A DNA stretch of 64,000 bases from Convolutriloba macropyga. Taxonomy: Eukaryota. The stretch spans positions 11,408,001 through 11,472,000 of the forward strand of contig NC_134475.1 of the NCBI RefSeq assembly GCF_964194025.1. Reading direction: 5' to 3'. The first letter of the stretch is position 1; every line of letters starts with the position of its first letter. The notes below the pieces were generated by a model. It worked only from the letters and a program-made list of their open reading frames with translations, ran no database searches and had not been told where the DNA came from. Below are positions 10,459 to 54,524 of the stretch, piece after piece. A program made the translations under genes and the position numbers.

Positions 10459-10618
10459 CGGATCTATTCCGTTTGTACCCCCAGCTCAGTGGGCGCATAT
10501 TATTTGCACCCCCAGACTCAAGTGTCATATTTTTACATGATGATTTATTACGCAATGACATGTGCTTTGTAACTGGGGGCTCATAACGTACTGGGGGGAC
10601 ACAAACGGAAAAGATCCG
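10459..10618. mobile_element. 160-bp MITE-like element with ~26-bp imperfect terminal inverted repeats, embedded in a larger dispersed repeat
   Basis: cggatctattccgtttgtacccccag ... ctggggggacacaaacggaaaagatccg. Copies at ~13439-13598, inverted at ~26758-26920 and partial at ~24900. Confidence 0.65.
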
Positions 10619-49716: not shown

Positions 49717-49899
49717 CTGTTTAATTTAGGGAAATTTCACCACCTAATGTTGACATATTAGAACAAACTAGAGCAAAACTGAAGTGTGCGTGAAGTGCGT
49801 TAAAAACGGCGAAGTCTTTCCAATTCATAATAAAATTAAGTTTCGATCTTTCATTTTTTCGTAGTAACATTTTTAATAAAACTGTCCAAAGCAATGCTC

Positions 49900-50600
49900 T
49901 CTAATTTTAATAGAGATAAAATATTAGAATCTGCTACAAATTTTTCTTACTGACTTCTTCTTATGTCGATGTCTCTTCCTACATAAAGTTTACCAAAAAT
50001 TCCTCAGAATTTTAAATATACGACTCAATAATATCAAAGAGATGGTGTATAAGTGCTTTCGCGCATATAGTTCAAACTTTTCACGTAAATGGATACTCAG
50101 ATAAACAGAAAATAGCCATCATCAAAACTCAAGCATCAATATGAAAAATGCATATTCAAAAAGCACTAACTGTTTTTTAATAAAAGTCAGGAACAGCGAG
50201 TAAAAAACAGCAAGGACTGCAGTTCGCAAAACTAAGACAATTAATATGAAAAAACTTCTAAATCAGTTCTGTCAAAGCCATTAAATTTAAAAGGTAGGGG
50301 TTATTGACGACGAGGAACTGACTAAAGCTGTGTTTCAATAGAAAACTCGTTGATAAATATTGACAAACAAATCAACCGAAAAAAACGGACACCACTTAAA
50401 GTCTATTCATTTCTGATAATAGGCGATGTCAACGAGATCAAAATCGGTACCTGCCAACAAAAGTGAAACCTGCCAGGAAAAATGGCAAGAAAAGCTCTTT
50501 TATTTTCTGAATAACTGATGTCAAAGATCTTTATATTCACTAATTATATCCTAAAACCAACTATATTCAAAACACTGTACAAATTAATAAAAAAAAGATT
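49900..50600 (+). mobile_element. Possible very decayed Penelope-like remnant inside the DEG/ENaC intron
   Basis: Only short fragments resemble PLE C-terminal regions (NGYSDK, ILKPTI). There is no intact ORF. Confidence 0.25.
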
Positions 50601-52095
50601 GCACCATTTAATAACAGCAAGAAAAGACCTAGTATAAAAATCAGGTAATTCAATTTTCTCTAAAATAAAGTTTGCAGTCGTAAAAAAAATCAATAGTTGT
50701 GTGCTGATACTTTAAAGAAACTAAATCAATCAATACAACAACAAATTTGACATATTTGGATGCATTTATTAGAATATAAAAAAATATTAAAAATGTGTTT
50801 TTTGTGGTAACATGTAAAAATTTCCTTATATTGTAATTAAAATAATCTTTGTCGAAGTCATGAAAAAACAGCTTCTTCTGGCACTTATTATTATCAATCT
50901 TCAGGTTAAGCTCGCCAGAATTTACTCTAGAGCCTTGATAAATTTATTAAAAGAAAACAGAAATGAATGTGGAACCATGAGCAATTTTGTCAAGGTTCAT
51001 TTGGCGGTAATACATATGTGACGTTATTTGAAAGCAATGAATAGTCTATGCATTTTTATTGTTCGTTTAGTCAATTTTGAAAACATTTTGATTAAAAAAC
51101 GTTTTAAGAAAATTCTTAAATCCGCAGGCAAAATGAAAAAGAAAGAGAAATTTCTGTAAATTACTTTTTTACAATTTGTTTTAGTTTTTCTCAGCAGTTT
51201 GTGTGACGAGCTTCTCCATTCGTCTAAACATTTTTCTCAGCATTTTGCCCCTCAACTTTATGGTTCTTCAGTATATGCTTTCAAAATTAAATAGTTTTTA
51301 ATCCTCTTGGATGGTTCCACGCAAATGATGTAAAATTTATGATGAGCTGGATGAAAAAAAAACCTTGACTGAAAAAATAAATTTTTTTTTGCACTGGTCT
51401 TCCTGGAATAAACGTTTACTCATAAATTTTTGCAAAATAATTTACTCGCAAAAATAATCATTTCGTTTTTTTTAAACAATTGAATACTCAAATTGCTGGA
51501 GAGCCCATAAGAGTGTTACTTTTATTTATTTATTACTGTCATTAAAAGATTCTAGACCCACGATTCTAGGCCTTATAAAAGATATGTTACGTTATGATAT
51601 GTTGTTAATGGATAATAGCTCATAGTTTGACATAATTCAATATAAAATTCCAGTAAATCCAAAGCTGTTACAGCTGTTCACCGAAGATTCAAAATTATGA
51701 CTTCTTCCGTCTGAGCATAGGAACTGCTGTGATATTGTCATATAAATACATAGCGCATTTCGATGAAAAAGGAGTTGAGACAACCCAGGTCGAGGTCCCG
51801 GCCGAGGTAACCTCTGAAAGACTAGTGTGCGCTCGATACTCATTGTGCGCGCCTGATCAGACGAGTTCCAGACCGAAATGACCTCTGAACAGACAAGTAT
51901 CACAAGTATTGTCCAGACTAGGATCGAAGCTTTTTCCAGGCCATGTAATTGGAGCGCACTGTGAACATGTGGGCGCTCGAAGATTTCCCAATCAGAGGTC
52001 ACTTCGGTCTGGGCACCTTGAAGTGGGTAGGATTTGGAACTAATTTTCACTCTGCATGAAAATGAAAATTGAAAGTAGATAATGGTGAAAATTCC

Positions 52096-52467
52096 CTTAG
52101 CCGTCAAGACACTCTTCAAATAAGACTGAACCTTAGTCGATTTAGATCGCTCAAGCAATCTGTTCACGACAAATGGCGCGTAAGTCTCACCCGGCCACTC
52201 AGTCAAAGATTGTTGCGTCGTGAACATAACTGACGTGCATGGGTGCGGGCACGGACAGTCCAAGAGCCCGTTTTGAGACTTGAACTCGACGTTTATTCTA
52301 CAGTTGCGCTGAATTGGGTCAAAATTGTCGCAGAATCTGAGAGAGGCGTTGTTGATGGAGGAATCGGTGCTGTAGAACTGGTCATAGCTGTCTATACATC
52401 CGCATGTTCTGGCCAGATCGTTCAATCGGCAGAAATAGAGGCAATCTTCTCTGTTGTAAACTGGGCT
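52096..52467 (-). CDS. DEG/ENaC channel exon, Cys-rich thumb domain
   Basis: YNREDCLYFC...TCGC...FC...NC...DCPCPHPC...SLTEWP. Acceptor ttttttgtcag at 52468. The donor position is inferred (see findings). Confidence 0.88.
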
Positions 52468-52911
52468 CTGACAAAAAAGGCAAAAGGGCACATCTTTTCT
52501 GCTAATTTTACAATTAGTTGAATTATTGGGCGCTGTCTTTTTGAAGATTTGTCACACATTTTTGAAGTCAAACTTTGGTGGTTATTTTAGTCACACTGGA
52601 GAGCAAAAAAACGAGTAATTTAAGGCGTGAAATTTTTTAGCTTCATTTCTATAGCAGAGATGGAATACTGTTTGAAATAATATTCTGGTTTTAATAGAGA
52701 TTTTTGTACCAGATGCGGCATTTTAACTACTTCTCCGTTTTTTTTAAAAAAAAATTTGATCAGGTTTTGATTTGTATGGCTTCCAAAGTCCATTCCTGGT
52801 AATTTTAAAGTTTTTTTTGGTTTAATAACTGAAAATTCTTTAAGTTGTATGTCGCTGGGATTTCTATACCCCGATCTCTTTACCTTTGGCAACAGAAAAG
52901 ATGTCCCTTGC

Positions 52912-53114
52912 CTTGGCTATGGCCGCACGGTTCAAATGCAAGCCTTGTGGCCATTCAGTTGTACAGTTGCCATATTTGCCTCCTTTTCGGACAATTTCCT
53001 TCTTCTGCAATGCCATAAATGCGGCAGAGCCAGGGCTCACTGGCGAACCTTTCGTGAACATATCTGGATAGATTGATGGAAAATGTTTGGCCACAATGGC
53101 CGCTGGAAACGAAG
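52912..53114 (-). CDS. DEG/ENaC channel exon, palm/beta-ball
   Basis: AAIVAKHFPSIYPDMFTKGSPVSPGSAAFMALQKKEIVRKGGKYGNCT resembles ENaC GARVMVH...[30 protein letters not shown]. Acceptor tttacag at 53115. Confidence 0.85.
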
Positions 53115-53879
53115 CTGTAAATTGGATCACGAACTGCTTCTTTTCAACTGAAGCGAGCATTTCAGTTTGATCTTTACTTTTCAAGTTCGTAAGGTTACGT
53201 AACTATGTTACGTAACTTTACGTACATAGGTTACGTAACTCTGATGAAGTTACTGAAGAAATGTGGCATTAGTCGAGAACCGCGTAGCCTTAAGAGATAT
53301 TAGTCAGAATTTCGGAGTGATTTTAGCGAAGATCTTGCTTAAAACACGAACTTTGCTGGTTTTAAAATCTCGCACTGTAAGTAAGAGAATTTGACAATCC
53401 TGAATTGATCACTGCATCTTGATCTGGTATTTTGAAGTGTGCATTGTCATATTTCAAATCCTATTACTAAATTTCTGTAAAAATATAGAAAACTTTGATT
53501 TATAAACACATGATTCAAGATCTTGCATTTCTTGAATTACTACCTAAATTTTTATTTCTATGGGCTATCGTTAAGGCAAAATGCAAATTTCTTTCAAAAA
53601 TAGGACGCTTGCAAGTTATTTTCAAATTTTGCGACAAATGGCTGTTGCATATTTTGCAAATAAATATATTATGCATTAAATAGATCGCCTTGGTGAAAAA
53701 TAAATGGCAAATGTTTCATCAAAAAATTCCACTAGGGGAATTTATGGTTCAAAGATTTAGAAAGCCAAAATTAGAATACATTGCTTAGGCTGAAAAAAAT
53801 AATCGAATAATTTTTATATTTAAAAAACCTGTTTTTCAGATTGTTCAAGGTTATGGTGCAAATTGAAAAGAAGCAATTC

Positions 53880-54524
53880 CTGTCATTCCAATGTACTCGT
53901 CAACGTCCAAAAACAGGGTTAGTTTCAACCCATAATTCACCCCCGGTTTCTTGGCAATTCTACTCTGGAACGGCTCTATCCAGCTCTGATCAGAGTTAAA
54001 ACTAAAACAGTTGCCAAACACCGGGTCCTGAAACTGGAAAAAGTCAGTATGGTCACAGTTCTTCCCATTGTATGAGCACTGGGCGATAAAGTCCTGACCT
54101 TGGGTTCCATAAGCTTCAATGACATTCAGGTCAAATCTCAAATATTCGCGAAGATCCGATAAATCGTTCAAACTTGACGTGTTGTATAGTTGATAGTAAT
54201 TTAGAGAATCGATAATAAGATCGTTCTGCAAGACTTGATTGATTTCAGTGGTCAGTTTTTCAAGTAGGAAACTCGAATTGCACCCAAAAACTAAATCTTC
54301 GTCAAAACCCAAATCGCATTCGGTCACGCCGTTGCAAGGTAGAGCACAGGTTTGTTGACCAGGACAGGTGATAGCTGGCCAGATACAGTTGCCCTGGATT
54401 GTGGTTATGTTTTCATTCCTTTTCAGGTTGATTTCGGTGCAATTTAAGGTCGGATGGGTTTCGTCGCTTTTGTCGTCACAGTTGAATTGTGAATCACATA
54501 CCCAGTCATACGGAATGCACAATT
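53880..54524 (-). CDS. DEG/ENaC channel exon with two LDL-receptor class A modules followed by the conserved extracellular core; no upstream exons recognised within the window
   Basis: CIPYDWVCDSQFNCDDKSDE and CALPCNGVTECDLGFDE (LDLa); FIAQCSYNGKNC, FGNCFSFN and GVNYGLKLTLFLDVDEY (DEG/ENaC). Acceptor gttttag at 54525, phase 1. Confidence 0.9.

Follow-up and report, generated by a model that had tools for sequence, protein, structure and literature searches.

A probable GC-AG intron closed by a long terminal helix in a DEG/ENaC channel gene of the acoel Convolutriloba macropyga

A DEG/ENaC sodium channel gene on the minus strand of the 64,000-nucleotide stretch of Convolutriloba macropyga DNA analyzed here (the window, to which all positions refer unless a contig is named) is interrupted at 52468-52911 by what is most likely a recently gained intron that begins with GC instead of GT. 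We observed that the two ends of this 444-nt interruption form a long helix, that the interruption is absent from the paralogs, that removing it at the GC borders reproduces the spacing kept by the gene family, and that non-GT donors and terminal helices go together among the introns of the family. The intron would be one more member of a class of hairpin-ended, probably transposon-derived introns in this acoel. The account as a whole, in which a lineage-specific GC-AG intron derived from an insertion is removed by the U2 spliceosome with the aid of its helix, appears to us slightly better than an even bet.

The host gene was recognized by its match to the Pfam ASC profile, and its exons within the window lie at about 54564-53880, 53114-52912, 52467-52096 and 49716-49477 (minus strand). 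All are open, the cysteine pattern and TM2 motif of the family are intact, and the best paralog is only 38% identical. Exon 2 (52912-53114 with the GC borders) was placed by the Pfam ASC match, reading frame and homology to paralogs and ends in GCC AAG (A-K); exon 3 (52096-52467; SPVYNREDC...LTAK) was placed by Pfam ASC and paralog matches. The ASC domain is preceded by an LDL-receptor class A (LDLa) module (54270-54524). The intronless paralogs L042-L044 have an extra CUB-like segment, recognized by eye, and a low-complexity linker that is acidic or rich in Gly/Ser. A further ASC-profile match, to profile positions 12-104 (the TM1 region), was located in a 180-aa open frame 1318-1590 nt past the window end and ~10.7 kb upstream of the LDLa exon (G000:C8:11473318-11473590, minus strand); this frame is probably the first coding exon of the host gene. 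The public model of the gene (NCBI protein P0002) begins at MFTKGSP inside exon 2 and is therefore truncated, leaving the GA-AG intron upstream of exon 2 unbridged. At the GG-AG intron downstream of exon 3 it uses a donor 36 nt upstream, and 12 residues conserved among paralogs (VQSYLKSVLTAK) are lost. The DEG/ENaC family of this genome is very large, with 3047 first-look candidates, and L005, L006, L021 and several other copies carry a frameshift or in-frame stops and are likely pseudogenes.

Four sequencing runs matched the locus, all from one study and all of genomic DNA that contains the introns; DNA contigs are contiguous across 52468-52911, with no joint at 52468/52911. Because the matching runs are DNA only, homology was used to judge the borders. 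The host gene was not found among the supplements of the eLife acoel ASIC paper. Searches of the genome returned 46 matches to exon 3, and there were 99 ASC matches among the 3047 first-look candidates. In the 22 paralogs whose frame is open across the site, the conserved motifs WPxxLxL and Y[ST]xxxC are separated by a spacer of 8, 9 or 10 residues without exception. The borders GC(52911) and AG(52468), phase 0, yield a spacer of 10 residues (NRAAIAKSPV; NEETVKKWPT in the nearest paralogs) that aligns without gaps to the four nearest paralogs and has K and P in common with them (AKSPVY vs KKWPTY). The K..P.Y pattern is found in this product and in L002/L004/L006, and in the intronless paralog L042 (753 aa) the K and the Y are exactly 3 residues apart, counting those in between. 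When we enumerated every in-frame, stop-free G-N...AG combination around the site, translating spacer peptides of up to 33 residues, GT donors in frame produced spacers of 2, 13, 16, 17 or 28 residues and none of 8-10; among the in-frame pairs, GC(52911)/AG(52468) alone left a spacer like that of the family, with an exon that ends AAG|G and with its acceptor at the first AG past the pyrimidine tract. The junction in P0002 (AIAK|SPVY) is the same GC junction. That model appears to be driven by constraints, as if made by a predictor limited to GT/GC donors, and given its loss of conserved residues at the GG-AG intron, it does not count as independent proof.

The first-pass annotation, which had proposed the phase 0 GC-AG borders with the first AG after the tract as acceptor, had also pointed to a strong competing donor, AAG|GTAAAG, that could splice in frame to a later AG. 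Both elements are where it placed them: the donor occupies 52878-52886 with its GT at 52883-52882, 28 nt inside the proposed intron (+29/+30), and the second AG lies at 52462-52461. An ordinary GT-AG intron between these sites would leave the inverted repeat as an inert relic; in a milder form of the same idea, both donors are used and splicing is alternative. We regard this as an unlikely explanation with real points on its side. Pairing of the GT donor with U1, over six contiguous positions (-2 to +4), is at least as good as that of the GC donor, and the AG at 52461 is in frame with it. The long helix contains the GC donor and stops just short of the GT donor. In the DEG/ENaC family here, GT-AG introns are normal and have GTAAGT, GTGAGA or GTATGA donors. 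Its use would add ARDIFSVAK to the protein and remove SP, and such a 7-residue loop insertion need not do harm. It would, however, result in a spacer of 17 residues where 22/22 paralogs have 8-10, and would lose the P common to the nearest paralogs. GT(52883) is out of frame with the first AG, so the GT donor also requires that the first CAG, directly after the pyrimidine tract, be skipped for a CAG 7 nt later, and the NCBI model picked GC, not GT. The segment on which the two versions differ at the 3' end, AGCCCAG (52461-52467; defined by sequence, enumeration and comparison of paralog spacers), supplies the codons for S and P and the first base of the V codon with the GC borders and is intronic, ending in the second AG, with the GT borders; as a direct repeat it agrees at 6 of 7 positions with AGCCAAG (52912-52918), with which exon 2 ends. 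Homology thus favors GC(52911)-AG(52468), and we hold these borders with fairly good confidence, short of proof.

The ends of the intron bounded in this way were paired using RNAduplex (first 30 vs last 50 nt). Intron nucleotides 1-22 (GCAAGGGACAUCUUUUCUGUUG, 52911-52890) pair with 52504-52480 to form a terminal helix with an energy of -29.2 kcal/mol. Of its 22 pairs, 20 are Watson-Crick and 2 are G-U, and the 3' arm is interrupted by bulges of 1 and 2 nt. When the exonic AAG (52914-52912) is allowed to pair with CUU (52479-52477), 3 bp are added and the energy reaches -34.3 kcal/mol. At random window positions paired in the same geometry, an energy of -29.2 kcal/mol or lower was reached in only 2 of 4000 cases (background mean -10.0, standard deviation 4.0), and none of 4000 shuffled arms reached it. 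An inverted-repeat search recovered a 15-nt core pairing 52487-52501 with 52893-52907. The ~22-bp bulged stem of the first-pass annotation, its 15-bp core with 2 G-U pairs and two bulges, and the extension into exonic AAG were thus all recovered. The minimum free energy (MFE) and centroid folds of the whole intron both close its ends with this helix; the folding z-score of the whole intron is only -0.81, so that the terminal helix alone stands out.

The 5' arm of the helix (52890-52911, by folding and inverted-repeat search) runs from intron +1 and contains the donor AAG|GCAAGG, which has six U1-complementary positions. The established consensus of GC-type donors consists of -2A, -1G, +3A, +4A and +5G, all of which are present. 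The 3' arm (52480-52504, by the same methods) stops 12 nt short of the 3' splice site and includes three AG dinucleotides, with last bases at 52502, 52499 and 52494, none of which opened a frame with the GC donor in the enumeration. It is followed by the tail CUUUUUUGUCAG (52468-52479), which comprises the pyrimidine tract CCUUUUUUGUCAG and the first AG, the acceptor of the proposed intron. A candidate branch site, CUAAU (52513-52517), was read from the sequence as the only perfect yUnAy; its A (52514) precedes the 3' arm by 10 nt and the 3' splice site by 46 nt, and three AGs separate the candidate site from the tract. The GU of the competing donor falls, in the MFE fold, within a 5-bp mini-hairpin stacked on the long helix. 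With a GC start, an AG end and a restored reading frame, the interruption has the sequence features of a U2-type GC-AG intron, as indicated by paralog spacer length, the enumeration and the P0002 junction. As for a U12-type intron, the donor /RTATCCTT and the branch motif TCCTTAAC are both absent from 52468-52911. Searches for known RNA families and tRNA within the intron returned none.

The two neighboring introns of the host gene have similar ends. In the GA-AG intron (53115-53879), a helix from +1 has an energy of -27.9 kcal/mol and its 3' arm ends ~16 nt before the AG; in the GG-AG intron (49717-52095), whose borders were set by a paralog length argument, the corresponding values are -18.4 kcal/mol and ~13 nt. 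All three introns therefore have an exon that ends AG|G, a helix that starts at +1 and a 3' arm that ends 12-16 nt before the AG. The GG-AG intron contains a very high-copy repeat (51836-52009), at which the summed contig depth is >7000 vs ~30-60 elsewhere and many contigs break. Among paralogs, in which introns were inferred by homology, a GA-AG intron common to L048 and L049 has terminal helices of -18.7 and -16.9 kcal/mol, and a GA-AG interruption common to L013 and L014 has helices of -33.5 and -39.6 kcal/mol. The non-GT stem introns of the host gene and of these two pairs thus range from -16.9 to -39.6 kcal/mol with pairing from +1 to +3, whereas six GT-AG introns (L028 a and b, L030, L045 a and b, L046) remain at the background level (-5.6 to -11.0 kcal/mol), in a comparison for which the sample is small and partly non-independent. 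A non-GT donor is linked to a terminal helix across these introns. The GC-AG intron of L007, which has a perfect CAG|GCAAGT donor, shows no terminal helix (-9.0 kcal/mol), from which it follows that GC donors here do not require one.

The paralog pairs also permit an estimate of selection. For L013 vs L014, dS is 0.061, dN 0.003 and omega 0.05; for L048 vs L049, dS is 0.43, dN 0.044 and omega 0.10. Judged from these coding sequences, the genes that carry such introns are functional and under purifying selection. Both pairs gained their interruption before duplication and stayed under selection, and the interruptions must therefore leave the mRNA. L048 and L049 are two inverted paralogs on one small contig (G000:C1113), with their GA-AG intron placed at the same codon. 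Exon identity between them is 84%; the introns can be aligned only over about the first 40 and last 50 nt and have unrelated sequence in between. When we looked for covariation in this intron, both helices were found to be kept at a dS of 0.43, but the pairing register differs and no clean compensatory pair emerged.

The position of the GC intron is lineage-specific in that it is absent from the 22 paralogs. In approximately 20 paralogs one open frame covers everything from exon 2 to the stop codon, TM2 included, and the three consecutive host-gene introns (GA, GC, GG) are all absent from about 20. The GC intron would most likely have arisen when DNA with inverted-repeat ends inserted into this formerly uninterrupted exon. 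The inserted DNA was probably a relative of an abundant hAT-like miniature inverted-repeat transposable element (MITE) with the terminal repeat GGATCTTTTCCGTTTG, and a second repeat would later have landed in the intron interior. The MITE family, with terminal repeat GGATCTTTTCCGTTTGTGCCCCC and a length of ~190-250 bp, has at least 530 candidate loci (including L055-L082), and its terminal repeat matches at five places in the window; members were noted at 10460-10617, 13583, 24902 and 26759. In L013 the intron consists of a MITE of 246 bp, and the target-site duplication is the 8-bp (G/A)CAGGAGC; in L013/L014, the sequences identify a MITE copy within coding sequence that acts as a GA-AG intron under purifying selection. 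The 5' arm of the GC intron has ATCTTTTC(T/C)GTT..GCC in common with the MITE terminal repeat (p=0.005 against the window background). A resemblance to the same repeat was also seen for the GA intron (p=0.016) and for L048 (p=0.0014), and the ends of all six GT introns gave p values of at least 0.29.

The arms of the GC intron are terminal inverted repeats of the kind expected of introners (20/22 complementary, with two indels). An exact 16-mer and end probes of 71-77 nt matched only their own locus in the genome, as did the arms with the adjacent 60-77 nt. A search with a 15-mer of the arm allowing 1 mismatch returned 219 matches vs 87 for the control, mostly to a different recurrent word, GGGACATTTTTTCTG. 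This word, one base off the 5' arm, recurs dozens of times across chromosomes, and possibly marks the ends of repeats that are related to the arms. The intron borders show no consistent target-site duplication and none abuts the MITE-like core; the flanking AGCCAAG|...|AGCCCAG (6/7), if taken as a 7-8-bp duplication, would imply an out-of-frame ancestor. As the arms are unique and a convincing target-site duplication is lacking, the case for a transposon origin rests on short motif resemblance.

The interior of the intron (52501-52875, by comparison with a consensus) is an old copy of an interspersed repeat of ~390 bp, sometimes tandem, with at least 359 candidate loci (including L032-L040). 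The copy within the intron (52875-52501) is 65.8% identical to the consensus (K2P 0.46) and other copies are 91-99% identical. If the arms are at least as old as this nested copy, their 20/22 complementarity is much better than neutral decay would leave, which hints at selection on pairing; the argument would be weakened if the nested copy, as is possible, comes from an old subfamily.

How the intron is removed can be proposed from these parts. We infer splicing at the GC borders, the branch point and a role of the helix as steps of one mechanism, in which the ordinary U2 spliceosome probably excises the intron by way of AAG|GCAAGG, CUAAU, the pyrimidine tract and the first CAG. The helix would loop out ~400 nt and so place the 5' splice site beside the branch point and the 3' splice site; it would bury the three cryptic AGs between the branch site and the productive AG, and the stacked mini-hairpin would bury the competing GU donor. 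The most economical model is thus U2 splicing in which the helix in effect shortens 444 nt to a few nt and hides cryptic sites. The main objection is that the GC donor lies inside the helix, which by classical rules should hinder, not help, U1 binding. The model would require either that U1 binds during transcription, ahead of the synthesis of the 3' arm, or that the helix opens transiently at its base. A bolder proposal, which we consider doubtful, is that the helix of the inserted element takes over part of 5' splice-site definition, such that GA, GC and GG donors are all spliced accurately. If true, donor choice defined by a helix would be a form of structure-assisted splicing in an animal, with selection on pairing and not on sequence.

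One step further along this line, the helix itself could set the cut sites, with excision that is independent of U1 or non-spliceosomal, like that of euglenid nonconventional introns. The five non-GT introns have one geometry, with a helix from +1 that ends 10-16 nt before the AG, found in none of the six GT-AG introns; cutting by the helix would account for the tolerance of GA, GC and GG starts, the genes that carry these introns are under purifying selection, and the arms are better preserved than the interior. Nothing so unusual is required of the GC intron, whose donor fits the GC-type U1 consensus well and whose 3' end offers a pyrimidine tract and a CAG. All members, moreover, keep the hallmarks of spliceosomal introns, a +1 G and a terminal AG after an exonic AG, the pairing register differs between L048 and L049, and L007 has a GC-AG intron without a stem, all of which makes a helix-directed cut very improbable to us. 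About as little weight, or a shade more, goes to the opposite extreme, in which the gene is dead or dying, the three interruptions are unspliced repeat insertions in a pseudogene and their G...AG borders are coincidental. All three do carry inverted-repeat ends and repeat DNA, the runs that match the host gene are DNA only, and several paralogs are pseudogenes with stops or frameshifts. In a decaying gene, however, one would not expect every exon to be open with the cysteine pattern and TM2 motif intact, or each interruption to be bounded by AG|G...AG such that its removal restores frame and paralog spacing exactly; a probable TM1 exon exists upstream, and paralogs with like interruptions have an omega of 0.05-0.10. 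The U2-spliced, helix-aided GC-AG intron is in our view the best explanation.

If the borders and the class are right, this acoel joins the very few animals that turn transposon-like insertions into introns, and its donor rule is relaxed to G-N. Introners were found in only two animal groups in a survey of 3,325 genomes (PMC9860276), beyond which Fritillaria is a further animal case. The locus bears on the origin of new introns and on how far RNA structure can replace splice-site sequence. Annotation quality is affected as well, as seen in the truncation of the NCBI model at the GA-AG intron and its loss of conserved residues at the GG-AG intron. As the most conventional of the trio, the GC-AG intron is useful as an internal control for whether a helix matters when the donor is already decent. 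A literature search for non-canonical introns of this kind in acoels found no paper.

Known systems resemble the GC intron in different respects. Introners and MITE-derived introns have been described in Micromonas, Aureococcus and dinoflagellates (PMC11282704; survey PMC9860276). The GC intron is like them in its lineage-specific position, in the inverted repeats at its ends and in a host coding gene that stays functional; introners, too, start with GC or GT and often co-opt their 3' AG. They form near-identical families with clear target-site duplications, whereas the GC intron has arms that occur nowhere else in the genome and no convincing duplication. Among the introns considered here, only that of L013/L014 is a bona fide multi-copy MITE, and the GC intron is multi-copy in its interior alone. 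By its sequence it fits a U2-type GC-AG intron, and it lacks the many copies expected of an introner family.

Borders other than GT are known from further transposon-like introns. In Fritillaria borealis (Henriet et al. 2019, cited in PMC11282704; PMC13326754), the non-canonical introns are mainly AG-AC and AG-AT, and the introners of Amoebophrya have no preferred dinucleotides (PMC7789003). Both resemble the present case in a recent transposon-like gain, terminal inverted repeats that can form an exon-joining hairpin, and non-GT borders. They differ in that the introns here keep the +1 G and the final AG, with only +2 varying (A, C or G), and in that the helix here runs from +1 and stops 10-16 nt short of the AG.

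The nonconventional and 'intermediate' introns of euglenids (PMC4770533, PMC6221363, PMC12501133) have a short pairing, typically of +4 to +6 with -8 to -6, and the nonconventional ones have variable borders and form circles on excision. As in the GC intron, an RNA helix joins the ends, and the intermediate introns add spliceosome-like borders. The GC intron is unlike them in its 22-bp helix from +1 and in its proposed borders, which match the U2-type GC-AG consensus. Variable borders without U1 complementarity, which mark the euglenid type, were not found, as AAG|GCAAGG has six U1-complementary positions. Ordinary U2-type GC-AG introns make up about 1% of animal introns (PMC7072748). The GC intron has their strong compensating donor, AAG|GCAAGG, their pyrimidine tract and their CAG, and it differs from them in its long terminal helix; the L007 intron, in the same gene family, is an ordinary one.

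The introns of Oikopleura dioica are very short (median 49 bp) and are not known to have terminal helices as a rule. Their non-GT forms are reportedly G[A/C/G]-AG (Denoeud et al. 2010). The likeness to the introns of this acoel lies in an animal spliceosome that tolerates variation at donor +2, and in Oikopleura dioica non-GT introns amount to 11-12% (PMC8008620).
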